Origin: Macrostomum hystrix
Lineage: Eukaryota; Animalia; Platyhelminthes
DNA length: 64,000 nucleotides
Assembly: GCA_950097015.1 (NCBI GenBank)
Contig: CATNEN010000014.1
Coordinates: 1,178,001 to 1,242,000, forward strand
Direction: 5' to 3'
The position numbers and the translations under genes are program-made. Within the stretch, counting starts at the first letter, position 1. Each line of letters begins with the position of its first letter. Below, one piece after another: positions 5,260 to 64,000 of this stretch. Under the pieces are notes generated by a model. The model searched no databases and was not told where the DNA came from. It worked only from the letters and a program-made list of their open reading frames with translations.

Positions 5260-7046
5260 CTTATTCTCAAATTACTCAGCAGACATTGCAGATCCGTCAC
5301 CAGCAACAGAAACGGCAGAATCACTCGGGTCAGCTGCAGCCGCAGTGACATCAGCACCAGAGTAGGCAGCAGCAGTTGCAGCAGCAGTTGTAGCACCAGA
5401 GTAAGCAGCAGCAGTGGTAGCACCAGAGTAGGCAGCAGCAGTTGTAGCACCAGAGTAGGCAGCAGCAGTTGTAGCACCAGAGTAGGCAGCAGCAGTTGTA
5501 GCACCAGAGTAGGCAGCAGCAGTTGTAGCACCAGAGTAGGCAGCAGCAGTTGTAGCACCAGAGTAAGCAGCAGCAGTGGTAGCACCAGAGTAGGCAGCAG
5601 CAGTTGTAGCACCAGAGTAGGCAGCAGCAGTTGTAGCACCAGAGTAGGCAGCAGCAGTTGTAGCACCAGAGTAGGCAGCAGCAGTTGTAGCACCAGAGTA
5701 GGCAGCAGCAGTTGTAGCACCAGAGTAAGCAGCAGCAGTGGTAGCACCAGAGTAGGCAGCAGCAGTTGTAGCACCAGAGTAGGCAGCAGCAGTTGTAGCA
5801 CCAGAGTAAGCAGCAGCAGTGGTAGCACCAGAGTAGGCAGCAGCAGTTGTAGCACCAGAGTAGGCAACAGCAGTGGTAGCACCAGAGTAGGCAGCAGCAG
5901 TGGTATAGCACCAGAGTAGGCAGCAGCAGTTGCAGCACCAGAGTAGGCAGCAGCAGTTGCAGCACCAGAGTAGGCAGCAGCAGTTGTAGCACCAGAGTAG
6001 GCAGCAGCAGTTGTAGCACCAGAGTAGGCAGCAGCAGTTGTAGCACCAGAGTAGGCAGCAGCATCAGCCGTTGAAGACAATGACGGCATTGGGATTAGTC
6101 CAATCGACTTTCCCATGCTGGACATGATTAACCTGACCTAAGACGTTCTGGTTCAACATAGCATCTAGTGCAGACGCAGTCTTTGTTTTATCGGAGGTTC
6201 AGGCTTATGCCAATCTTCCGCATCGCGTCGCCAAGGACATTCTTCAAAAATCTTCCTAGAATTCTCAGCAGAAATGTGGCCGAAACAGCACAATAGCGGA
6301 GCCGTGGTAGGTCAGTCAACAAAGCAAAAATGTTATGCCGGGACTGAACATGATAGTAAGTAGCTTCGAACAGCTCCGCAACGCTAGTTACTGTGAGCTG
6401 ATGCTCACGCAAAAGGCGATTGTAGACTTGGCCGAGAAAGAACGAAGTCACCCCTCATTCTCCGATTATAAAGCTGATCCTGACTGACCAGCCGGCCATG
6501 CAGCTCTGCGATGCGTTGATCCGTAGGTTTGCTGATGATTATTTCCCTGTAGATTTCCTCCAGCTGACCTGCATCCAGCACTTCTTGCTCGTCGTCAGCG
6601 TATAGAAGCGAATTCCGGACATTGTTAAATATGTCGTGCGCCTTCACCTTCCTTTTTAGCTCTTTTCTTCGCTACAGCGTAGACGCCTCTCTTCTTCCTC
6701 AGACAACCTCTCCCACAATTCAGCTACTCTAGCTTTCACTTTGTTCCTGCACTCGTCTACAACGAATTCTTCGATTGACTCGACGAAGTCGTTCAAGTCC
6801 TTGTGTGTCACTCTAACGGTATCAGCTTGAAACATTACAGAGATTTTTTTGTGCAAAGAAAGAATAAACTCGAGACTAAAGGCTTGTAAAATAAGACCAC
6901 GCAGCATATTTGCGAAATTACTTACTGAAATTAAAATTAAAATTGGTGAAAAACTTGCTTGGCGACCGAAAAGCACAGCAGAAGCGGCAGAGGCAACTTC
7001 CAATGCACAGCAGTGGGGTGCAGAACAGTTGGGTGTGTCCCTTCTC
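5260..7046 (-). pseudogene. Frameshifted coding-like region of unknown family
   Basis: Consecutive overlapping minus-strand ORFs (6656-7048, 6405-6647, 6188-6451, 5190-6125) have protein-like composition and are linked by apparent frameshifts. No family recognised. Confidence 0.4.
5355..6060. repeat. 27-bp tandem repeat (GCAGCAGCAGTTGTAGCACCAGAGTAG)
   Basis: About 26 copies. The minus strand reads AAAYSGATT repeats, with a frame-shifting irregularity near 5900. Confidence 0.92.
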
Positions 7047-43030: not shown

Positions 43031-45305
43031 TCAAAGCCGCTCCAGGGCGCCGTCAAGCGAGCTCGTGCCGCGGCCGCTGCCGCCGCGCTTGACCAGCAGG
43101 GGGGCCGAGGAGAACATTTGAATCTGACTGGTAAGGCGTTGAGGGTCAGTCGCCAGCGGGCGCACATAGTTGAAGGGGAAGAAGCCCTGCCGCTGGGTGC
43201 GCCGGTTTGTGCCGAACCAGAACTCAGGCTGCTGCTCGTTGACCCACAGCACTTCGACAATGTCGTCAGGCTCCAGGCGCAGCTGGTTGGAATCGAAGAT
43301 GTTCGGATTGCGCTCGCGGGCCACCTCGACGTCGAACGGGAAGCTCAACTGGCGGAGGAACTGCGGCGATGAGGGGAGGCTGAGGACAAACTTTATTCCT
43401 GATTATTTGCGACTGGGGATCAGGGACAAAATTGAATATCTGGGGTAAAGCTGAGGATCTGGGGTAAAGCTGAGGATCTGGGGTAAAGCTGAGGATCTGG
43501 GGTAAAGCTGAGGATATGGGGTAAAGCTGAGGATCTGGGGTAAAGCTGAGGATCTGGGGTAAAGCTGAGGATCTGGGGTAAAGCTGAGGATCTAGGGTAA
43601 AGCTGAGGATCTGGGGTAAAGCTGAGGATCTGGGGTAAAGCTGAGGATCTGGGGTAAAGCTGAGGATCTGGGGTAAAGCTGAGGATCTAGGGTAAAGCTG
43701 AGGATCTGGGGTAAAGCTGAGGATCTGGGGTAAAGCTGAGGACCTGGGATGAAACTTGGGACCTGGGATGAACATGAGGATCTAAAAGTTGGAGATTAAG
43801 GAGGCTGGAAAATCCACCTGATGACTCTCACCTGGAATTTTTCCTCACTGTCAGTGATGGTCACAGGCGCCAGGTAGATGGCGGGCACCAGCCCGGACTC
43901 GCCGGAGCGCCGCCGGATGACGCGCCACCAGTCGGGGATCTCCACGCCGTCCGGGTCGCGCATGGTCTCAAGAAACACAACCAGGTCACCGCGCTTCAGC
44001 GCCAGGTTTTCGGCTGCGTCCTGGGTGATAAAAGCGATGGGATCTCTTAGTATAGGGACTGGGAAATCCACTTCTAAGTAGGTTTGATAGCATCGAATCT
44101 GCCTTTCACACCAATATTTATCATTTATTTTATAACCAACAAACACACCCGAACTGGTTCCTGCGATTCACGCCCATTTCCACTAACATTCACGAACATT
44201 TCCCCATCATTCACGCACATTTCACATCATTCACGCACATTTCCCTCATCATTCACGCACATTTCACATCATTCACGCACATTTCACATCATTCACGCAC
44301 ATTTCCCTCATCATTCACGCACATTTCACATCATTCACGCACATTTCACATCATTCACGCATACTTCACATCATTCATGCACATTTCATGAATCAGGGCC
44401 AGCCTGTCACAGCCTGGAAGCTTTGCACTAAGTAATCAATCATGCACATTTCACTTTCACATCATTCACGCACATTTCACATCATTCACGCACATTTCAC
44501 ATCATTCACGCACATTTCACATCATTCATGCACATTTCACATCATTCACGCACATTTCACATCATTCACGCACATTTCACATCATTCACGCACATTTCAC
44601 ATCATTCATGCACATTTCCCTCATCATTAACGCACACTTCCCCCCCTCATTCACTAAAATTTCACAACATTCACGCACATTTTCCTGAGATTCATGTGCT
44701 AGCTTAGTTTGCATGGAACAAGCATTCGAAGGCTCACCGGAGCAATGGGGTCCACTTTAAAATCGAATTTCGCGCGAAACATGGGCTTGCTGGCCTAGAA
44801 TTATCATGTGGAGAATACAATGCTAAATTAGATAGATCTGAGCATTTCTAGTAAGCCAGCATGGGAATTCAGAGCACTCACTGGGACAGTGAGGGTCGAG
44901 TCGCCCAGCTTGTTACTCTTGTAGAAATCAATCAGCGATTGCATGGATGGGAAGTCAATCTGCCCAATCTTGAACTTGTAGCCATCGTGAGCCACCCGCT
45001 TGGTGGCCAAGATTTTGTAGTGGTTTGTCTTTTCCTCGTCGCTGTGGGGAATCAGGTAGTTGCTGACTTTGGGGATGTATACAGGAGAGAGCTAAGAGGC
45101 TATTGCCCCAACCCAAATTTTGATCCTCCTAATGGGTAACCTCCCACAATGACCAGTAGATAGCTTGCTCGCGCACTAAACTCACCGAACACTTAGTGCA
45201 AAGCTTCCAGGCTGTGACAGGCTGGCCCTGATGAGGAAGACGCCAAGGGCCTCCTTCAGCAAGACATCATTAGCTCGGTCACGTGTCATGGCACCAAAGA
45301 ACCAA
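43031..45305 (-). CDS. CRK: Crk/CrkL-type SH2-SH3-SH3 adaptor, 5' end unresolved
   Basis: Exons 45305-45186, 45041-44882, 44794-44738, 44020-43832 and 43360-43031 join in frame. SH2: WFFG..FLIRAS..FALSVR..HYKI..FKIG..LIDFYK. nSH3: FRAKFDF..LKRGD..WW..GLVP. The C-terminal SH3 RNPNIFD..L.LE.DD..GFFPFNYV is typical of the Crk cSH3. Confidence 0.87.
43440..43745. repeat. 20-bp intronic minisatellite (GGGGTAAAGCTGAGGATCTG)
   Basis: About 15 copies in the last Crk intron. Confidence 0.94.
44205..44690. repeat. 20-bp intronic minisatellite (CACATCATTCACGCACATTT), interrupted by a 42-bp insert
   Basis: Tandem copies lie on both sides of 44392-44433. Confidence 0.92.
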
Positions 45306-48091: not shown

Positions 48092-49499
48092 TTAGCAAGT
48101 AGGCCTACCTCTGGCGGCGCATCTAGAGATCCGGAGAAGACCTAGGGCAACTTTCTCTACTGGGTTGCCCATTATTATGCCGTTTAATATGGTAACGTGA
48201 CTGCTGACTACCATGGACTGACTTGTTTTACTTTTCTTTTTCTGCTTTTAAACTCTAAATAATTTAAAGCGGAAACAAAACTAGGACATTGCCATATATA
48301 TATTGGAATTGGACCCAAAAAAATATATTGATAGTTGTACTTACTCCTCTGTTCCTTTAATTCCGAGCTGTTGCAAGCTGATGTTTATAATATGTTTAGC
48401 CATTGTGTTCGTGACTTCGTGACGACCAGCTTGTGAATGCTATTGAATTAGGTTTTTGTCTACTATACACTTTTTTTATTTAATAAACTAGAACACTAGA
48501 TAGTGGCCCTTAAAAATAGTTGACAACTAATAGGAGTAGAGCAAGAAGGGCGGTAGGACAAGAAGACAAGCTACCAGGAATATGTAATTTTAAATCAAGT
48601 CTAGTAAGATACAACAGAAGCAGAGGAAACCGCAAATCTGGGGGCACAAACTATTTCTAGGAAATATAAATGCTGTAACGATGTTACTATTTATTTTTTG
48701 TTCGGCGTGTGTAAATTTATTTGAGGAATTTCGATCATTTATATTATGTTTTTGATGTCTGGGTGCTAGCGTTATATTTAATATTTTTGTTACTTAATCT
48801 TTACAAAAAAACCTGGCGTGAATTTAAATATAATTTGAAATGTCGGTTTTTTGGCTTTACGAGTATGATCGTAAAAAGTCACCTTGAGCGCACATTTATT
48901 TGCACCAAAAATGCACTATCGAAGGTTTTGATCAAGATATAGACGGAGCTCGTTTGCAGGCTGTAATTTTGGCACTTTTTTACTTTTCCTGACGGTGTTT
49001 ATGAATATAGCATGGTGGAATACAGAATTACTTTGATAACAGGTTCTTCTGTGTGTCTGGGTGTCTACTAAGCTCTCAGTTCAGTAGACGTCAGTTTTAC
49101 TCGGAATTGTAGCATTAAAATACAAGACGCACAGTTACACATGCACACAGTTCTTGTACGATTCGATACGATAAGGAGCGGAAAGATACGTAACCACATG
49201 ATGACACCCAGGAAGATTTATTATGAAGCTCTGAATCTAGAAACTGGAGAGACAAGTCCCCGCCAAACCCCTATTTTCCGGATCAGTGTGGGCTGACTGG
49301 CTGTCCCAAAAATGCAAGCTATAAGCAGATTGGAAATTCTGATCCACCCCTGGACCCCGGATCGCAGAAGAACAAGTATTGTTATTAAACTGTAATAATT
49401 GCTTTTATTGCAATCGGCATAAAGAAAATTATCAAAAAGACAAGTTGCGTGCGCAATTGAACACATAAGGAGTGCCCCGCTTCAGTTTCTAAAGCACCA

Positions 49500-52829: not shown

Positions 52830-55800
52830 TCAAACTAGCGGCTTTGACTCCGGTGACTCATTCTGCTTCTCGGCAGATCCGCCCGCAGCTCCGGAGTCAG
52901 TTCCGGCCTTCTCCATGGCGGTGTCGGACTGCCGCTCAGCCTGAGGGAAGGGGGAGAGTGCAAATTGAAATTGATTCTCTTGTCAGCCATTGGCCAGCAT
53001 AGATGTACGCTTAAATCAACCTCCAATCAAGGCCGGTCTAGAGTCCGACTCACCGGGGCACCGCCGCAGGAGGGCAGCCCGGCGGCCTTGAATCGGAACT
53101 CGATCGGCAGGGCGACGAAGGCGCCGATGGCGCCGGCCAGCAGCACAAGATACAGGCCCACCAGGTCACCAGGTGACAGCGTCCGGGGCGAGCTGCCGCT
53201 GTCCGAGTCGCACTTGTCGGAGTTCTTGCGCCACCAGCGGCTCTTCATACTGTCCAGTTCGCCGTTGGCCTTGACCTTCAGGATTGCCGCGTCAAGCGCC
53301 TGCTTGATGTCCGAGCCTAAGGGATATCGATGTGGTGGGATAAACGGATCAGAAATGGAGGGATCCAAAATGGAGGTTCGCCACAGCAGGAGTGAAGCCT
53401 GTCGGCTCACCCTTAGCAACAGCCAATCCGACGTCAACAGTGGAAAGTCCGGTGGGCACGGAAACGAGGTCGCACTCGGTCAGTGCGTGGTAGTCGGCCG
53501 ATATGCCCTCAGAGATCCACACGTAGTCGCCTTTCCTCACGCGGTCAAGGGCTTCGCTGTTTGAGTTGGAGTTGTGCTGCGGGTTGCGGCTCAGGAAGGC
53601 GTGCACAGCTCGGAATTCGGCCACGTTGGAGGTCTGCAGTCAGCAATGGACGATTTCATTGTTTGTTGAAGCTTGTATGAAACTGTACAAGCCCTGTGTT
53701 CTGATATTTCAACCAGTTAGAAACAGAGCCGTAGTAGATTTGAGAGCTTTAAAGTTCAGGTAGAAATCAATAACCCTGCCAGTTTAGTAAGTACGTAAAT
53801 GAGTAAAGAGGTCGGTGGCAGAGCGGTCTATCGCGTTTTTATCTTGCACCAGGCTGCCTGAGCTCGATTCTGCGGTGATGCCACATTCATTTGGGGCGCA
53901 GCCGCCGAGAGAAGGCTTGGGGGCTTGTCGTGCAATTTACGCCATTGAGAGTCAACCTCCAAGGCACAGTGAAATGTACGAGTTTTGCTTTCATCACTCT
54001 GATGAAAGTCAGAGCAGATGTGCACACATGTGTTAGCGTGTGCTTGCGTACGGTATCTGTGTGCGTGTGTGCTCAGGAGTCAGTGAAATTGGCAGAATTG
54101 CCTCCTCGCTGGCTGCAGTGTCACCAAATGATGTGCAATTGCCCGCAGCCTTCCTGCAATTATTACTTTTTTAAGTAAGCAAGTGAGTGCTTGTGGGTTT
54201 TTTTCTGTACCTGTTTCCCATTTTCTCTCTTCCCTTTCTCTCCCCTCCCTCTCTCCCTCCTCCTCCCCGCTCACAGCCAGCATGCTCTCGGTGGAACCGC
54301 CCTTCAGCACGCCGAACGGCACAGCCGTCTGTCCCACGAGGTCCAGCAAGTTGCTAAATTTGGCCGCCGCAGACGCCTGGCCGGCGAGCAGGCGGGGCAC
54401 GAGGCCGGCCGTGTAGCAGCAGGCCGTGGCAAGGGCGAACAGCCACCAGGCGAAGGCCAGGATGCGGGCTGCTGGCGCCTTCGGGGCGCGAGCGAAGCCT
54501 GCGGGAGTGATTTGGCGGCATTTAAGCTTCACTCTACCTGAAATGAATTCGCAGCCTCACCCTGAATGAATCCGCAGCGTCACCCTGAATGAATCCTCAG
54601 CCTCACCCTGAATGAATTCTCAGCCTCACCCTGAATGAATTCTCAGCCTCACCATGAATGAATCCTCAGCCTCACCCTGAATGAATCCTCAGCCTCACCC
54701 TGAATGAATCCTCAGCCTCACCCTGAATGAATCCTCAGCCTCACCCTGAATGAATCCTCAGCCTCACCCTGAATGAATCCTCAGCCTCACCCTGAATGAA
54801 TCCTCAGCCTCACCCTGAATGAATCCTCAGCCTCACCCTGAATGAATCCTCAGCCTCACCCTGAATGAATCCACAGCCTCACCCTGAATGAATCCTCAGC
54901 CTCACCCTGAATGAATCCTTAGCCTCACCCTGAATGAATCCACAGCCTCACCCTGAATGAATCCTCAGCCTCACCCTGAATGAATCCACAGCCTCACCCT
55001 GAATGAATCCTCAGCCTCACCCTGAATGAATCCTCAGCCTCACCCTGAATGAATCCACAGCCTCACCCTGAATGAACAGCCCGCCGGTGATGAAAGCGAA
55101 GGCCCCGCAGCCTGCCTTGCGGGCCTTGACGGCTACAGCGGAGTCGCCGCCACCGCTGCGCAGCTCGTAGGGGGACAGGAGGAAGATGACAAAGGCCAGC
55201 GCTGTGTAGATGATGTACATCAGCAGCAGCAGCAGCCACGTCTGGCACGGAGATTGGGGGCGACTGAGATAAATCTACCTGAGGAGTCTGACCAATCTAC
55301 CTGAGGAGTCTGACCAATCTACCTGAGGAGTCTGACCAATCTACCTGAGGAGTCTGACCAATCTACCTGAGGAGTCTGACCAATCTACCTGAGGAGTCTG
55401 ACCAATCTACCTGAGGAGTCTGACCGATCTACCTGAGAAGTCTGGCCAATCTACCTGGGTAGTCTGACCAATCTACCTGAGGAGTCTGACCAATCAACCT
55501 GGGTAGTCTGACCAACCTATCTGAGAAGTCTGACCAATCTACCCGAGGCGTAACTAACCGAGGCGGCAAACGGCTGAGCCAGGATGGCAGCGCTGGTAGC
55601 CTGCTGGCTGGGCTGGCGGTACAGCAGCGACATGCCGGAGGTGGACACCGGCAGGGTGAAGTCCACGGCCTCCAATCGGGCGGGCATTATGCGCAGCGTG
55701 GCCAAGGTCAGGTCGGCGGTCTGCGGGTGAGTAGTTGGCACTTAGCAGATTCCGCATCTGCACTCAAACAGCTTTCACTATTTGATCTCACGATAGCAGT

Positions 55801-56377
55801 AGTGCTTACCCGGTTCACAATGTCACCCATGAGGCCGTCCCAGCCGCCCTGCGGGGTTCGGCCGCCAAAGTTTCCGTCGGCCACCTCGAAGATTCGGTAC
55901 TGAAACTTCAGCTCCCGCTGCAGCAGGTTCAGAAGGTCCACGTAGAAGCCCTCATAGCCGACAGCGTCCGCCCCGGCTGTGCGCATCACGAACGGCTTTT
56001 GCTGTGAGTGCGCGGGATGGTTGGGATTTGGGATCAGAGGGGAATTGGGACTTTGGGATCAGAGGGGAATCGGGATATGGGATCAGAAGGGAATCGGGAT
56101 ATGGGATCACAGGTGAAAATTTCGATTTTGAATCAGAGGTGGCTGTTGCGATTCAGGAGCAGAAGATTTAGATATGGGATCAAAGGTGAAGATGGTTCTG
56201 TCCATGTAAACTATAGGGTGGCATTGTGACGCCTGGATGTCGCCATTCTCGATCGGTCACACTCACCAGCACTGTAACGACCTTGAGGGTCCTGTTCTCC
56301 AGGCTGGCAGTGGCTCCAAGCTGCCAGCAGCTGCTGAGTAGCAGGAGCAGTGGCAGCGGCGGCTGTCTGCAGGTCAT
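52830..56377 (-). CDS. Ionotropic glutamate receptor-like subunit lacking the amino-terminal domain, 8 exons, 486 aa
   Basis: Exons 56377-56267, 56001-55810, 55720-55559, 55241-55067, 54498-54275, 53633-53411, 53316-53054 and 52940-52830 join in frame. The signal peptide is followed directly by S1 (RTLKVVTVLQKPF..YEGFYVDLL..DGNFG..WDGLMGDI..ADL..RLEAVDFT), then M1, pore FIQG, M3, S2 (GGST, WISE, C, G, RWW..C) and M4. Confidence 0.9.
53811..54166 (+). mobile_element. tRNA-derived SINE (~355 bp), copy 1
   Basis: A-box-like TGGCAGAGCGG and a degenerate B box (GCTCGATTC). Colinear with the reverse complement of 63125-63481 over its whole length, ending in a TTA-rich tail. Confidence 0.78.
54548..55076. 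repeat. 23-bp intronic minisatellite made of the iGluR exon-4 splice donor
   Basis: About 23 copies of TCAGCCTCACCCTGAATGAATCC (minus strand GGATTCATTCAGG|GTGAGGCTGA). Confidence 0.95.
55268..55545. repeat. 22-bp intronic minisatellite (AATCTACCTGAGGAGTCTGACC)
   Basis: About 12 copies, degenerating toward 55545. Confidence 0.92.
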
Positions 56378-56436: not shown

Positions 56437-56443
56437 CTTTATA
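56437..56443 (-). promoter_or_regulatory. TATA box candidate for the ATD-less iGluR
   Basis: TATAAAG on the minus strand about 60 nt upstream of the ATG at 56377. Confidence 0.5.
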
Positions 56444-57127
56444 AGGCCGAAGTGACAGCTTTTATGAGGCTCAGGGCACGGGCGCTTCAGTCGCTCTCGC
56501 AGTCTTTCATTCACCGGCCAGGGGAGGGGGTGGGTGCATCGCGCCGGTTCTGCGCCCCCGACTCCGGGATCAGAATCGTCATGATTCCCGCCATGGTGCC
56601 CGAGGGGATAAATTATGGATGCGGCTGTCAGAGCTGGTTGGGGGTGCAAAAACTTGCCATGAAGTCTGGCTCACCGCAGTACCAAGGGGAGCAGTCAGCT
56701 CATGACTGATGCTCCATGAATTCAGTATGCAAGCTCAAACTGCTCAGCGGCCTCACTAACTGCTGCTGCTGCTGCTGCTGCTGCGCTCTGTTTTATGGCC
56801 GGCCGGGGTTGGGAGGCGCCCGAAGTCCTGAGGGCTGCGGGTGGACCCACAATGCAATTTGCCTAATTGCTGCTTCAGCGCAGCGGATGCTGGAGCAACC
56901 TGTGATGGGAGCTTGGATTCTGGCAGGCTTACCTGCATCATAGTATCACTTTGCAGTTGAAGCTGTGAACAGAAAACTGCTGAGATGAGAGCAGGTCAGG
57001 CCAAAATTTCTGCCCGTAACACGAAATAGGTCTTCGAATTTTAAAAAGCAATTCGCTTCTTAAAACTACATTAAAATTTGCCAGCCAATGAAACGATCAA
57101 CTCGTGTAACCCTATCTGTCCCCTGTT

Positions 57128-57563
57128 CCCTGTTTCTCATCTCACTGTTTCTCATCTCACTGTTTCTCATCTCACTGTTTCTCATCTCACTGTTTCTCAT
57201 CTCACTGTTTCTCATCTCACTGTTTCTCATCTCACTGTTTCTCATCTCACAGTTTCTCATCTCACAGTTTCTCATCTCACTGTTTCTCATCTCACTGTTT
57301 CTCATCTCACTGTTTCTCATCTCACTGTTTCTCATCTCACTGTTTCTCATCTTACTGTTTCTCATCTCACTGTTTCTCATCTCACTGTTTCTCATCTCAC
57401 TGTTTCTCATTTTACTGTTTCTCATCTCACTGTTTCTCATCTCACTGTTTCTCATCTCACTGTTTCTCATCTCACTGTTTCTCATCTCACTGTTTCTCAT
57501 CTCACAGTTTCTCATCTCACAGTTTCTCATCTCACTGTTTCTCATCTCACTGTTTCTCATCTC
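57128..57563. repeat. 15-bp minisatellite (CTCATCTCACTGTTT)
   Basis: About 29 copies between the two iGluR genes. Confidence 0.95.
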
Positions 57564-57872
57564 ACCCATTCTTGTCATCGCCAGCAGAAACAGAAACAGA
57601 CTGAATGCAAATTTCTATAGATCTTCGCAGTCATGAAACTGTATGTATTTGAGTCTTAAGCAGCTAACTGGTACAAAGTCAATAGTATGCCTCGATAAAG
57701 CACAGTACAGAATATTGAGTGCCAGAAATATACGAAACAGTGCAGCCTGCACAGTACTGCTTTAGTTCGTTGTCTATCGAGAGTGCGAGTGCCCTGTAAA
57801 GTCCCAACAAAGTCCCAACAAAGTCCCAATTGAGTCTCAGCTTTTGTTGTGATTGTCCAGCGGAAAATCCAC

Positions 57873-60800
57873 TCAAGACAGACCGTCTCGCGACCTGCCT
57901 GATGGGTGCCGCGGCTGCCGATCGGACTGCATCCAGCGGGCGTCCTCCGAGCTGCGCGCGCGGTGCAGTGCAGCGGCGGCAGCCCAATCGGCTTCGCCCA
58001 CGGATGACGTCATAAGGCGGGCCGCCTGGCGCCGGCCGCCGTTGCTGCTCGACGCGGAGGCGGTCGCTGCGGCAGTAGCGGCGATGGCCGCAGCTGCTGC
58101 CCGCTGGGCTCGCTGCGCCAGGTGGTTGGTGGGCCGCGTGGAGGGGCCGAAGCAGCGGGAGGCGAAGCGAAGCTCCTGGCAGAGCTCGGTGCTCATTGGT
58201 TGCTGGGAGATTGGGGGAGAAAATCTGGCTTAGACTGCTTGTTCACACATTTAGCCTCAGGGCATCCTGCGCCACTGTACTTACTCTTCTCTCACTCGCC
58301 TTCGCCCTGGTTTCCTCATCCTCTCCCTCGCATCCTCGCCTTCGCCTCCTCGCCCTCGCCTCCTCGCCCTCTCCGTGTCAATCTCGCCCCGTGTCCCGCA
58401 TCCTCACCCGCTCCTGCACGGCTCGCCGCTTGGCCTTAAAGCAGAACTCCAGCAGGGTGGTAAGGCCGCCCAGCAGCATGCCCACCAGCAGCACCACGTA
58501 GACGCCAGCCACCTGGTCGATGCCGAGTCCTGGCGGCTCTTCCTGGCCGTCGCTGGAGGCCTCGTCGCACGGCTTCTCGATGTCCTCCTCGCGCCACCAG
58601 CGGCGGCGCAGTTTCTCCAGCACCTGCTCCTTCTGCAGCTTCAGGATCACCTCCGAGATCACGTCGCGATAGGGTGAGCCTGGGATCGCAAGTTTGGGAT
58701 TCAATATTTGGGGAGAAAAGCGAACATTTTTGGAGAAAAACTCAGTTTAACTTAAATTGCAGACTGAGAAGATTGAAAAATTGAGAAGGTATAAAAATAA
58801 GGGAATGTGAAACATATGGGAGAAATGATCATAGATGATAAGAAGATAGGAGAAATGAGAGGAGGGGAAGAAGATGGGAGAAATGAGAGGATGGGAAGAA
58901 GATACGAGAAATGAGAGGATGGGAAGAAGATAGGAGAAATGAGAGGAGGGGAAGAAGATGGGAGAAATGAGAGGATGGGAAGAAGATGGGAGAAATGAGA
59001 GGAGGGGAAGAAGATGGGAGAAATGAGAGGATGGGAAGAAGATGGGAGAAGTGAGAGGATGGGAAGAAGATGGGAGAAATGAGAGGATGGGAAGAAGATG
59101 GGAGAAATGAGAGGATGGGAAGAAGATGGGAGAAATGAGAGGATGGGAAGAAGATGGGAGAAATGAGAGGATGGGAAGAAGATGGGAGAAATGAGAGGAT
59201 GGGAAGAAGATGGGAGAAATGAGAGGATGGGAAGAAGATGGGAGAAATGAGAGGATGGGAAGAAGATGGGAGAAATGAGAGGATGGGAAGAAGATGGGAG
59301 AAACGAGAGGATGGGAAGAAGATGGGAGAAATGAGAGGATGGGAAGAAGATGGGAGAAATGAGAGGATGGGAAGAAGATGGGAGTAATGAGAGGATGGGA
59401 AGAAGATGGGATAAAAGGCAGGAAGAACAGGTAGAAAAGGGATTCCTGCGCCTCACCGGTGGGCAGTCCGATGCCGTAGCCCTTGGAGTCCAGCAGGCCG
59501 CCGACCTTCATGAGGTCGCAGTTTCGCTCCGTGTAGTACTCGTTCATCGTGCTCTCCAGGATGAAGGCGTAGCCGCCTCTGCGCACCCGCTCGATGCCTT
59601 CCTGAGTTTTGTTCACGAACACTTCCGGCCGCTTGCTCATGAAATCCCACATGGTCTTGAACACCTGGATGCTCTTGGCCATCTGGGCGAGTTTTGGCAG
59701 GTTTTTTAGGAATTTACCCTCACTCACCTTGGATAAGTCATCAAGCAGAGATACTCCTTTCCTCAATGCTCTCTTCTCTTCCCAATCCTCTCTTCTCTTC
59801 TCAATCTTCTCTTCCCAATCCTCTCTTCTCTTCTCAATCTTCTCCTCCCAATCCTCTCTTCTCTTCCCAATCCTCTCTTCTCTTCCCATTCCTCTCTTCC
59901 CAATCTTCTCTTCCCAATCTTCTCTTCCCAATCCTCTCTTCGCTTCCCAAATCCTCTCTACGCTTCCCAATCCCCTCATCTCTTCCCAATCCTCTTCTCG
60001 CTATCCTCTCTTCCCCATCCTCTCTTCCTCATCATCTCTTCTCTTCCTAATCTACTCTTCTCGTCCCAATACTCTTCTCCCCATCCTCTCTTCCCAATTC
60101 TCTCTTCCCCCAAGCCTCTCCTCTATTTCCTACTTTTAAAATGATCTTTTTAAAATCCCTTTCTCCAATACCTTTTCTCAGTTCTCTCTTTCCATTTTCC
60201 TGCTCCCCATCCTCTCATCCCAACTGCATCACCTCGAAGAACTGGTAGGTGGAGCCGCTGGCCAGGGTGCCGTATTTGATCTTGGTCTGTCTGGCCAGGT
60301 CCTCCACGCTCTCGATAGGCGAATGCATTCGCTCCACGGTCAGGAAGGCGGCCAGGTTGGCCGTGTAGGAGCTGATCATGATCAGCGTGAAGAACCACCA
60401 GATGCCGCTGATCATCCTCGTGGACAGAGCACGCGGCCAGATTTCGGAGCCTGGAATGGATTCGGCGAGCTGGGGTAAAACCTCCAGAACCTCCGAGACC
60501 CCGCTCTCCTCCCTGACCATCCAGCTCTCCTCCCTGACCAACCAGCTCTCCTCCCTGACCAATCAGCTCTCCTCCCTGACATTCCCGCTCTCACCCAGAC
60601 ATTCCCGCTCTCACCCTGACATTCCCGCTCTCACCCTGACATTCCCGCTCTCACCCAGACATTCCCGCTCTCACCCTGACATTCCAGCTCTCACCCTGAC
60701 ATTCCCGCTCTCACCCTGACATTCCCGCTCTCACCCTGACATTCCCGCTCTCACCCTGACATTCCCGCTCTCACCCAGACATTCCAGCTCTCACCCTGAC

Positions 60801-63795
60801 ATTCCCGCTCTCACCCTGACATTCCCGCTCTCACCCTGACATTCCCGCTCTCACCCTGACATTCCCGCTCTCACCCTGACATTCCAGCTCTCACCCTGAC
60901 ATTCCCGCTCTCACCCTGACATTCCCGCTCTCACCCTGACATTCCCGCTCTCACCCTGACATTCCCGCTCTCACCCTGACCTTCGCGCTCTCCTCCCTGA
61001 CCTTGCCGTTCTCCCTGACCCTCCCACTCTCAATGCGGCGGGGACCTACCCTGCTGCATGAGCGAGCCAACGGTGAACCAGAGGCTGTTGAGCATGGAGA
61101 ATTGGTTTTCCACCTGCTCAGTGTCCGAGCTGCACGGGTTCGGATTGTACCACTCGTAGGGCGAAAGCTGGGCCACTACGAACAGCACGAAGCTGACGAA
61201 CACATAAGCTGCCAGCACCGAGCTCCACACCTTTTTAATAAAAAAATGTCGATGCTCTAGTATTTCTACTGTCAGTAGACTGTGTCTTTTTGGGTGAAAA
61301 GCTTAAATTTGTTCCTCACCGTTGGCGACAGGGGCGATAGGAAGGAAAACAGGTGCGGTTTAGTCTTGACAGGCTTCTTAAACAGAATGCTCAGGCCGAG
61401 TGACATGTACGGCGTGGTAAAATCGATAACTCGCTCCCTCTCATAGGTGATGGTCAGCGGCGCCACGGCCAGGTCCGCTTTCTAAAAAAATTATTATGTA
61501 AGGTTAGTATGGAGTGAGGTTATGCGGAGAGGTGTTTGTGCGGAGTGAGGTTGGTGCGGAGTAAGGTTGGTGCGGAGTGAGGTTGGTGCGGAGTGAAGTT
61601 GGTGCGGAATAAGGTTGGTGCGGAGTGAGGTTGGTGCGGAGTGAGGTTGGTGCGGAGTGAAGTTGGTGCGGAGTGAGGTTCGTGCGGAGTGAGGTTGGTG
61701 CGGAGTGAGGTTGGTGCGGAGTGAGGTTGGTGCGGAGTGAAGTTGGTGCGGAGTGAGGTTCGTGCGGAGTGAGGTTGGTGCGGAGTGAGGTTGGTGCGGA
61801 GTGAGGTTGGTGCGGAGTGAGGTTGGTGCGGAGTGAGGTTGGTTCGGGGTGGGGTTACACCTTATTTATGAGCTCGCCAATCATGCCGTTCCAGATCTCG
61901 TTGCCTTCGCTGTCGTTGCTGACTTTGGCTCCGTAGTTACCATCCCCGACAAGCCGGACGGTGAAGTTGAAGCCGGCCTCCTGGGCGATGAGGTTCAGCA
62001 TCTGGATGCAGAAGCCATCTAGCTTGGGCGGATTGTTGGTGTCATTTTTGTTTTTCACCTTCACAAACGGTGGATCCTGGATTTGATTGGTTGGCAACAT
62101 TTAGCTTTACAGAGTGGAACTCAAAGCAATGAGTACAGACAAGACCTCGCTGACCTCCACGGTGGTGACGCGCAGGGTTTTGTTCTGTAACTTCTTGTGT
62201 ACCTCCTCCAGCGGCTCCTTGAATGTCCGGCTGATGTTGAACCCGCTGCTCCGATCCCAGCTGCCGAGCTGAGAAGCAACCAAGAGAGAGACGCGGTCAG
62301 GATGGACTTTTGTCAGAACTTTTCTGAATCAGCGCCGTGCACAAGCATACCAGTATGGAACATGCTCCTCACCATCCTGAAGCCCACAGACGTGAGCTCG
62401 TAGGCCTTCAGGCTGAAGTTCACCCGCTTCCAGTCGGCGTCAAACTTCACCGGTCCCGTCAGCGTCTGCGATGAGATGTCCTCCGGGACCTTCAACGGAG
62501 CATTTGCGAGCAAGTATTTCAATTAACAGCAGAAAGCCCACGGGGAGAAGGTTAGCGTGGTCTTCCCCAGCGGGAAGGTTAGCGTGGTCTTCCTTCTCTT
62601 AAATGTCGAGCAGAATGGCAAGATGGTCAAGGGGAATGAAGCAAAAAGCTACTCACCGATCGCATGAAGTTAAGCAGGCTGGCGCCGTTCTGCCAGAAGC
62701 GCTGACCTGAGCCGCAGGTCATCGGCTGCGGCTCCACCGGCTGCGCCCGGTTGGTGAAGTGGATGCCGTTGGCCAGCAGCACGATGCTGTCGAACACGAT
62801 GGCTGCAGACATCTGCGGGTTGACGGATGCGCTGAAATACATCCGCGGAAGCCCAAAATCTGCGGGCACCACCAGAATCTGCCCAAAATCTACCACCAGA
62901 ATATGCCCAAAATCGATCACCAGAATCTGCCCAAAATCCACCACCAGAATCTGCCTAAAATCCACCACCAGAATCTGCCTAAAATCCACCACCAGAATCT
63001 GCCCAAAATCCACCACCAGAATCTGCCTAAAATCCACCACCAGAATCTGCCTAAAATCCACCACCAGAATCTGCCCAAAATCCGCCACCAGAATCTGCCC
63101 GAGCACAATCACTTGAATCTGCCCAATAATAATAATTGCAGGAGAGCTGCGGGCAGTGGCGCACCATTTAGTGACACTGGACCCGCAGCCAGCGAGGAGG
63201 CAATTCTGCCCATTTCGCTGACTCCTGAGCACAAACGCACACAGATACTGTACGCAGGCACACACTCACACAGGTGTGTACATCTGCTCTGACTTTCTCA
63301 TCGTCAGGCAGTGTACACTCTCACTGTGCCTTGGAGGTTGGCCCTCTAGGGCTCAAATTGCACGACAAGCCCCCAAGCCTTCTCTCCGCGGCTGCGCCCC
63401 AAATGAATGTGGCCTCGCCGTGGAATCGAACTTAGGGACCGTGGTGCGAGAGGCAAACGCGATAACCGCTCTGCCACCGACCCCCCTGAATCTGCCCAAA
63501 TGCTTGATCAGAATCTCCCCAAATCCATCATTGGAATCTGCTCAATCATATGGTTTAAATTCGACCAATTCAACTCCAAACGTGTTTAAGTCACTCTCAC
63601 CGGCAGCATGTTCTCCAGCAGGCCACGGTACTGTGCCTTCTGGGTCTCGATGTTGAAGATCTCGGAGCGCATTCGCTCCACGGATCGGCCGCGGTCATAG
63701 TGCCCGGTCCGCGGCACCAGCGGCAGCATGGAAATTGCCGTGAAGTTGGCCGTTCGAACCACCTGGAAGTCTGACAGATCCAGTCGCTGCACGTC
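57873..63795 (-). CDS. Kainate-type (non-NMDA) ionotropic glutamate receptor, 5' part beyond the window
   Basis: In-frame exons 63795-63601, 62812-62657, 62465-62373, 62268-62155, 62076-61861, 61481-61320, 61230-61050, 60450-60233, 59682-59457, 58679-58408 and 58202-57873. Motifs [70 protein letters not shown] and [15 protein letters not shown]-type sequence lies upstream of S1. Confidence 0.95.
58830..59410. repeat. 28-bp purine-rich intronic minisatellite (GGGAGAAATGAGAGGATGGGAAGAAGAT)
   Basis: About 20 copies in a kainate-type iGluR intron. Confidence 0.93.
59765..60125. repeat. Degenerate pyrimidine-rich intronic repeat (TCTCTTCCCAATCC)
   Basis: Imperfect low-complexity tandem units. 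Confidence 0.8.
60590..60985. repeat. 20-bp intronic minisatellite (ATTCCCGCTCTCACCCTGAC)
   Basis: About 19 copies in the intron after the Q/R-site exon. Confidence 0.94.
61510..61850. repeat. 16-bp intronic minisatellite (GGAGTGAGGTTGGTGC)
   Basis: About 20 copies. Confidence 0.93.
62872..63105. repeat. 24-bp intronic minisatellite (CCACCAGAATCTGCCCAAAATCCA)
   Basis: About 10 copies. Confidence 0.92.
63125..63481 (-). mobile_element. tRNA-derived SINE, copy 2
   Basis: Minus strand reads GTCGGTGGCAGAGCGGTTA (A box) ... GTTCGATTCC (B box) ... CTGCAATTATTATTATT tail. Colinear with 53811-54166. Confidence 0.8.
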
Positions 63796-63828
63796 CTAAA
63801 AAGTTATTAAAATCATTGGACCTCGTGA

Positions 63829-64000
63829 ACTCGGGACCTCGTGAACTCGGGACCTCGTGAACTCGGGACCTCGTGAACTCGGGACCTCGTGAACTCGGGA
63901 CCTCGTGAACTCGGGACCTCGTGAACTCGGGACCTCGTGAACTCGGGACCTCGTGAACTCGGGACCTCGTGAACTCGGGACCTCGTGAACTCGGGACCTC
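63829..64000. repeat. 16-bp intronic minisatellite (GGACCTCGTGAACTCG), runs off the window
   Basis: More than 10 perfect copies. Confidence 0.95.

Follow-up and report, generated by a model that had tools for sequence, protein, structure and literature searches.

An ionotropic glutamate receptor-like gene of Macrostomum without an amino-terminal domain and with an altered pore loop and gate

Gene structure and architecture

The window analysed here is a stretch of 64,000 nt of the Macrostomum hystrix contig CATNEN010000014.1 (all coordinates are positions in this window), which holds two genes of the ionotropic glutamate receptor (iGluR) type on the minus strand. The gene in focus spans 56377-52830 and encodes a protein ordered as signal peptide, S1, M1, pore loop, M3, S2, M4 and a tail ending in KPLV, with no amino-terminal domain (ATD). 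Rebuilding the model from the sequence yielded eight exons with a coding sequence (CDS) of 1461 nt, corresponding to 486 aa and a stop codon, with no internal stops and with GT...AG borders in all seven introns. The intact eight-exon model of the original prediction was thereby reproduced in its coordinates, length, exon number, motifs and TATA box. The CDS joined from window coordinates was used for translation, alignment, substitution rates and tree building, and for mapping the model back on the window by local tblastn, where it matched its own eight exons only. Full-length database, fold and structure searches were made with the Macrostomum lignano orthologue (P0001) as a proxy, and the window exons were searched singly.

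Exon 1 (56267-56377) encodes the initiator Met, a signal peptide comprising residues 1-24 (56377-56306) and, immediately behind it, the first strand of S1, LENRTLKVVTVL; P0001 has the same Met, signal peptide and start of S1. Residues 1-24 resemble a signal peptide in their basic n-region, Leu-rich core and A-T-A before the cut. S1 continues through exon 2 (55810-56001), which includes Y-E-G-F and matches Pfam Lig_chan-Glu_bd with E = 3.9e-14, and ends in exon 3 (55559-55720), where A-T-L-R-I-M-P-A-R (55702-55676) was aligned to ...APLTITHVRE... of GluK3. Exon 4 (55067-55241), with a weak Lig_chan match, encodes M1 (55241-55176), the loop between M1 and M2, and the pore helix as far as F-I-Q-G. 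The rest of the pore loop (G-F-A-R-A-P-K) was placed by Pfam and PDB alignment in exon 5 (54275-54498), together with M3 (CYTAGLVPR, 54418-54392), the linker from M3 to S2 and the first part of S2, which includes G-G-S-T (54301-54290). Exon 6 (53411-53633) carries W-I-S-E-G (53519-53505) of S2 and the first Cys of the S2 disulfide, and was aligned with the ligand-binding domain (LBD) of the fly kainate-type receptor CG3822. Exon 7 (53054-53316), which matches Pfam Lig_chan, completes S2, adds the second disulfide Cys and goes on to M4 (53164-53096; predicted helix 413-442 in the orthologue model) and the first part of the cytoplasmic tail, and exon 8 (52830-52940) encodes a low-complexity tail, K-P-L-V (52844-52833) and the stop codon.

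In the per-exon Pfam scan, exons 2 and 3 matched Lig_chan-Glu_bd, exons 4, 5 and 7 matched Lig_chan, and none matched the ATD family ANF_receptor. The closest solved relatives of P0001 were GluK5 (E = 5e-62, residues 26-471), then GluK3 and GluK2, followed by the AMPA receptors GluA1/2. An AlphaFold2 model of the orthologue, with a predicted local distance difference test (pLDDT) score of 78, in which M1, the pore helix, M3 and M4 are all helical, matches chains comprising the LBD and transmembrane domain (TMD) of AMPA, kainate and delta receptors at E values of about 1e-30. The Pfam domains in the order S1-TM-S2-TM, the match to GluK5 and the fold match establish the protein as a member of the iGluR superfamily.

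The upstream neighbour is a canonical iGluR gene of like orientation (57873-64000, minus strand), with the tail of an ATD (ANF_receptor match at 62630-62905) that runs past the end of the window, and with the motifs MQQG and SYTANLAAF. Its last coding exon with the stop codon (57873-58205, minus strand) shares 79% nucleotide identity with the end of an M. lignano gene encoding 988 aa (L001 6122-6449, gene end at 6448). All seven intron positions and phases of the ATD-less gene are common to this neighbour, with one acceptor perhaps shifted by a codon, and the intron after exon 1 has the same place and phase as the neighbour's intron after ...LRVTTVE. Between the neighbour's stop codon and the ATG at 56377 lie about 1.5 kb, of which 436 bp are a 15-bp minisatellite, and neither an ATD-like open reading frame (ORF) nor an ANF_receptor match was found in this gap. 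A TATA box (TATAAAG; 56437-56443, minus strand) was read from the sequence at positions -66 to -60 relative to the ATG; in the M. lignano orthologue, TATAAAA precedes the start codon by about 100 nt. When the spacers separating the two iGluR genes in either species were compared by blastn, the sole conserved non-coding block was a 26-nt element (TGACAG..GCATCCATAATTTATCCC; 56605-56630, minus strand), which lies about 230 to 250 nt before the ATG and is identical in 24 of 26 positions to L001 9774-9799. The element holds TGACAG and TAATT-type cores, and could possibly be a homeodomain-type cis element in the promoter of the ATD-less gene.

The spacing of only 1.5 kb between two genes on the same strand could also reflect a 5'-incomplete or chimeric model, in which ATD exons are joined by read-through or splicing from the neighbour or from elsewhere and the apparent signal peptide is an artefact of an in-frame Met. 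The reading frame is open for 28 codons before the ATG, M. lignano produces polycistronic precursors that are resolved by trans-splicing, and no canonical AATAAA lies between the genes (nor does ATTAAA, an uninformative absence), all of which would be compatible with such a model. However, the neighbour has its own conserved last exon and stop codon, and the M. lignano model consists of two separate genes, with the ATD-less gene numbered as gene 1 within its transcriptional unit. The M. lignano genome annotation was built from RNA-seq assemblies, and the orthologue's start at the same signal peptide therefore has transcript support. Furthermore, the signal-peptide character is kept in the orthologue and in both paralogues despite a sequence identity of only 20 to 50%. 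One of these paralogues, P0003, is derived from an intronless Logan transcript contig of 1625 nt (L002), in which the ORF extends upstream to a Met and signal peptide and an in-frame stop precedes that Met. The other, P0079 (519 aa), is dispersed in the M. lignano genome and has an acetyltransferase gene 2 kb upstream. Given the gap without an ATD ORF, the start of the orthologue, the upstream stop in the paralogue, the neighbour of P0079 and the conserved 26-mer, hidden ATD exons are very unlikely. The ATD-less architecture originally proposed thus stands, and in view also of the TATA box we consider a 5'-incomplete or chimeric model highly improbable.

Relatives, phylogenetic placement and selection

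The relatives of the gene were sought with exon 5 as the query of an exhaustive HMMER search against 1.84 billion representatives. Two close clusters were recovered, and close relatives were found only among Macrostomum-type sequences, which supports the proposed lineage specificity in the form of a Macrostomum-restricted clade within this search. Protein searches by word index, which scored the 8000 candidates with the most words in common, gave M. lignano proteins only, a result that carries no information on other taxa. The orthologue P0001 (PAA89430.1, 493 aa), which has a second, 98% identical copy (P0080), is 70% identical to the window protein. Its exons of 114, 192, 162, 178, 224, 223, 266 and 123 nt correspond to window exons of 111, 192, 162, 175, 224, 223, 263 and 111 nt, a difference of 0 to 12 nt per exon. 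In M. lignano, the gene for the 988-aa ATD-bearing iGluR is followed by the 493-aa ATD-less gene and by an SH2/SH3 (Crk-like) gene. The window agrees with this order, with the downstream part being only partly supported: tblastx with the M. lignano downstream gene gave one short match (48339-48392), and an SH2-like ORF of 60 aa at 44831-45010 had no Pfam match. The orthologue and a paralogue pass the Pfam gathering scores of both Lig_chan-Glu_bd (PF10613) and Lig_chan (PF00060), and neither has an ATD; the database names of the relatives are 'hypothetical protein' or 'Glutamate receptor'. The C-termini of P0001, P0080, P0079, P0003 and the window protein all read [KR]-P-L-V, at the end of Ala/Gly-rich tails that are otherwise poorly conserved, and this ending suggests a docking or endoplasmic reticulum (ER)-export motif.

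Two observations concern further M. lignano sequences of this type. A subclade-B gene (L003 9990-10003) has a pyrimidine-rich tract and TTGCAG four nt before the ATG, which looks like an acceptor for spliced-leader trans-splicing. P0085 and P0086 (UniProt A0A1I8IYI3 and A0A1I8H853) represent the P0079-type gene with internal exons or segments skipped. The region around the S1 Arg is missing from them, as is a part of the pore loop, and they most probably stem from faulty gene prediction and are not additional paralogues.

Phylogenetic placement was assessed with a maximum-likelihood tree of 33 rows, built without NMDA, epsilon or lambda outgroups and without references for ionotropic receptors (IRs) or kainate-binding proteins (KBPs). 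The five ATD-less sequences form a clade with 100/100 support, divided into subclades A and B, on a stem of 1.12 substitutions per site. This clade is not joined to the ATD-less proteins of nemerteans, snail or amphioxus. Among the former, P0002 (Lineus longissimus XP_064648822.1, 989 aa) consists of two complete ATD-less iGluR-like units in tandem, each with a signal-peptide-like start, and is probably two adjacent genes fused by the gene predictor; P0002 and P0018 form a separate ATD-less clade with a degenerate M3. The Branchiostoma protein P0013 (496 aa) is ATD-less, kainate-like and of similar size, and has the near-canonical M3 T-Y-T-A-N-L-T-A-S, so loss of the ATD without rewriting of the gate occurs elsewhere too.

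In the literature, no paper on these Macrostomum proteins was found, nor any described ATD-less clade with a CYTAGLVPR-type M3 in which they could be placed, which agrees with the original expectation. A large metazoan iGluR survey includes no flatworms and excluded sequences with fewer than four SYTANLAAF residues, and flatworms are not among the taxa of an IR survey.

Selection on the gene was estimated by the Nei-Gojobori method from the window gene and its M. lignano orthologue, as the ratio of nonsynonymous to synonymous substitutions (dN/dS). For the ATD-less gene, dS was 0.70 and dN 0.218, giving a dN/dS of 0.31 overall, with 0.21 in M1-M3 and about 0.34 to 0.36 in S1/S2. The S1-M4 part of the canonical neighbour, which is about 94% identical to M. 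lignano, gave a dS of 0.69, a dN of 0.038 and a dN/dS of 0.056 for the same two genomes. With a dN/dS of 0.31 at a dS equal to that of the neighbour, the ATD-less gene is a fast-evolving gene under purifying selection and not a decaying copy, which had been the concern behind the dN/dS check put forward with the original prediction. A young pseudogene, that is, a decaying tandem duplicate still open by chance, would account for a dN about six times that of the neighbour and for the loss of conserved gate and filter motifs. Against it stand an ORF and a full set of splice sites that are intact in two species at a dS of about 0.7, the low ratio in the membrane core, and a second paralogous subclade with the same architecture and C-terminal motif. 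This reading was rejected on the basis of dN/dS and conservation, and its probability is close to negligible.

Ligand pocket, pore loop and gate

The direct alignment of single exons with PDB entries bore out the proposed retention of the agonist-binding residues. The Arg of PAR-LEAVDF, which is the last Arg of the exon 3 motif, pairs with the ligand Arg of GluK3 and represents the alpha-carboxylate Arg (equivalent to R485). Ser-Thr of GGST pairs with S654/T655 of GluA2, and Glu of WISEG with the LBD Glu of CG3822 (equivalent to E705). The equivalents of Arg485, Gly653, Ser654-Thr655 and Glu705 are thus all kept in the window protein; in subclade B, Ser-Thr is replaced by Ala-Ser. According to the rule of Ramos-Vicente et al., R485 together with an acidic residue at 705 denotes an amino-acid ligand, while G653 and T655 denote the glutamate type. 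The window protein fits this rule, which predicts an amino-acid ligand of glutamate type. The rule does not cover a further feature of S1: the equivalent of GluA2 T480 and of the corresponding Thr of GluK3 is the first Arg of A-T-L-R-I, which is invariant in the clade.

These pocket residues also bear on a possible chemosensory function. By definition, IRs are divergent protostome relatives of iGluRs that are poor in ATDs, and the Macrostomum gene resembles them in several respects: it is a protostome gene with no ATD, it has a divergent pore and M3, it evolves faster than its synaptic-type neighbour, and it belongs to a small lineage-specific expansion (subclades A and B) that arose by duplication. 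The protein could accordingly be a tuning subunit of IR type, acting in peripheral sensory cells on dissolved amino acids and depending on an ATD-bearing co-receptor for trafficking. However, IRs are set apart by LBDs in which some or all of the glutamate-contacting residues are missing, typically one or more of Arg, Thr and Asp/Glu, whereas Arg, Ser-Thr and Glu are kept here. In addition, the clade stands apart from other spiralian ATD-less proteins in the 33-row tree, which held no IR references. An IR-type function is therefore regarded as unlikely, though worth bearing in mind.

Compared with the pocket, the pore loop and gate are strongly altered. Aligned via the orthologue, the pore tip F-I-Q-G-F-A-R corresponds to M585-Q586-Q587-G588-C589-D590-I591 of canonical subunits. 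The Q/R site (Q586) is Ile in the window protein and Val in subclade B, the acidic residue at +4 (D/E590) is Ala, and the next residue (+5) is Arg, while the filter keeps Gln587, Gly588 and its Pro-Lys. In M3, SYTANLAAF has become CYTAGLVPR: A7 is replaced by Val, A8 (the lurcher position) by Pro and F9 by Arg. Y2, T3, A4 and L6 are kept, so the motif is altered at five of nine positions, and the window protein lies exactly at the inclusion threshold of Ramos-Vicente et al. (at least four of nine SYTANLAAF residues). The M3 motif reads C-Y-T-A-G-L-A-T-R in the orthologue (P0001/P0080, L001 10001-16646) and C-Y-I-[AG]-N-M-[VG]-[PS]-V in subclade B. The lurcher position is thus Pro in the window species, Thr in the orthologue and Ser or Pro in the paralogues, but never Ala. 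Of the gate and pore tip described in the original prediction, CYTAGLVPR and FIQG were read directly, with Ile at the Q/R site, whereas the emphasised Pro at the lurcher position turned out to vary among relatives. What stays constant across the clade is Cys1, Tyr2, the absence of Ala from position A8 and the rebuilt pore loop; subclade A also has an Arg at the top of M3.

Within the clade, the pore loop is the most conserved region, with 92% identity to the orthologue and 59% to the paralogues, compared to 35 to 41% for S1/S2. It is at the same time the region least similar to the canonical neighbour (25%). The pattern is that of a pore loop that was rebuilt and then conserved, which favours a working but altered pore over a dead one.

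One rival reading is a non-conducting protein. Similar to KBPs or to a resting GluD, such a protein would bind an amino acid and scaffold or signal without ion flux, or it would tune canonical receptors in the role of a silent or dominant-negative partner. The Ile at the Q/R site, the lost +4 acid and the retention of only four SYTANLAAF residues are in line with this, and exon 4 (M1-pore), when searched alone against PDB, found no match. By language-model features, the nearest clusters were moreover of KBP type, with the names 'glutamate receptor U1' or 'probable glutamate receptor'. At about 460 aa they are alike in architecture and size; this likeness is a resemblance of form and carries no phylogeny. 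Vertebrate KBPs (from chick, frog and fish) are likewise ATD-less non-NMDA proteins, of about 460 to 490 aa, that keep an amino-acid pocket. KBPs largely keep the canonical M3 motif, unlike the Macrostomum clade. They belong to the chordate lineage and the window clade to flatworms, so the ATD was presumably lost independently; the flatworm origin and the conserved flatworm synteny make this a simpler reading than KBP membership. The conservation of precisely the pore loop and M3 (0.21 in dN/dS, and the identities given above) would be unexpected for a functionless pore, though constraints from assembly could explain part of it, and the retained Gln587, Gly588 and filter Pro-Lys likewise speak against loss of conduction. 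We therefore see a non-conducting binding protein as a possible but rather unlikely alternative.

Proposed origin and function

Known ATD-less relatives of iGluRs are the vertebrate KBPs, the protostome IRs and bacterial GluR0. With canonical AMPA/kainate-type (AKDF) subunits, namely GluK2/3/5, GluA1/2 and the neighbour, the window protein shares the order S1-M1-pore loop-M3-S2-M4, the S2 disulfide cysteines and the Arg/Ser-Thr/Glu triad, and, with the neighbour, the seven introns. It differs from them in the missing ATD, the altered filter and M3 and the Arg at the T480 position, at an identity of only about 30%. Taken together, the evidence leads us to favour, by a modest degree, a functional and independently transcribed Macrostomum gene for an ATD-less non-NMDA (AMPA/kainate-like) subunit that combines a glutamate-type pocket with a rebuilt, conserved pore and gate.

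For its origin by duplication, as well as for its ligand, conduction, gating and heteromeric partners, we infer the following. The gene most likely arose by partial duplication of a canonical ATD-bearing iGluR gene, in which the exons from the ATD-S1 linker exon onward were kept. The copy would have gained its own promoter, start codon and signal peptide, and afterwards have been kept beside the canonical iGluR gene in at least two species. To judge by its residues, the S1/S2 clamshell may still bind an alpha-amino acid, probably a glutamate-like one, and the subunit would join a tetrameric pore with a rebuilt and then conserved selectivity filter and gate. Because both filter (Ile or Val at the Q/R site, loss of the +4 acid, Arg at +5) and gate are altered, permeation and gating should differ from those of canonical receptors. 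Likely differences would be a low Ca2+ permeability, an altered conductance and a gate that is biased towards the open state or weakly coupled. Lacking an ATD, the subunit would probably assemble through its LBD and TMD, perhaps together with a partner that has an ATD. As far as the sequence goes, the ligand binding and atypical gating suggested originally may apply.

Several results weigh against an AMPA/kainate-like subunit with these properties. With the additional Arg at the T480 position, glutamate might bind differently or not at all. The hydrophobic Q/R site, the lost +4 acid and the disrupted M3 could equally mean a pore that does not conduct, and the roughly sixfold nonsynonymous rate relative to the neighbour indicates relaxed or shifting constraint. 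In the tree, the clade falls outside a group of 16 AMPA/kainate-like proteins (90/84) that includes the tandem neighbour, and it is not placed as the neighbour's sister. A tree constrained to unite the clade and the flatworm neighbour is worse by 12.5 log-likelihood units, at a borderline p of 0.069 in the approximately unbiased (AU) test. An origin as the neighbour's tandem sister thus found no support in the tree, and the AU test gives no clear rejection of it; a local partial duplication is neither shown nor excluded.

The gate can be compared with known mutants: A8T in the SYTANLAAF motif of GluD2 is the Lurcher substitution, and equivalent mutants, engineered or linked to disease, exist. 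The M. lignano orthologue naturally has Thr at A8 and the window protein has Pro. Unlike in Lurcher mutants, the change at A8 is here fixed, variable between species, and set in a motif altered at five of nine positions next to a rebuilt filter, and its effect cannot be read across from single Lurcher-type mutants. A bolder idea is that the clade represents a channel on the iGluR scaffold beyond the norm of the family, with a natural lurcher-type gate and with a filter from which both classical cation determinants, the Q/R Gln and the +4 acid, have gone. Such a channel might either leak constitutively under modulation by the ligand or have given up its selectivity for cations. That precisely the rebuilt pore loop is so strongly conserved keeps the idea open, though we deem it quite improbable.

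While the architecture alone is unsurprising, the combination of features in this one small clade is new and undescribed in the literature searched: a glutamate-type pocket is kept, the filter and M3 gate are rewritten under purifying selection, and natural substitutions occur at the lurcher position, including A8T in M. lignano. The clade is a natural experiment on the coupling of LBD and gate, and on the Q/R and +4 positions when both are lost, in a genus where transgenesis and an RNA-seq-based genome annotation are at hand for M. lignano. It also likely documents an independent loss of the ATD beside the presumed parental gene type.

Finally, minisatellites were observed in nearly every intron of both iGluR genes and in the intergenic spacer, at 54537-55076, 55272-55548, 56023-56117, 57130-57565, 58816-59415, 60500-61032 and 61511-61856. 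Each of them is different, with periods of 15 to 28 bp and up to 29 copies, and all are of high identity (91 to 97% match). With regard to the introns of the paralogues, the comparison for P0079 covered the first three.

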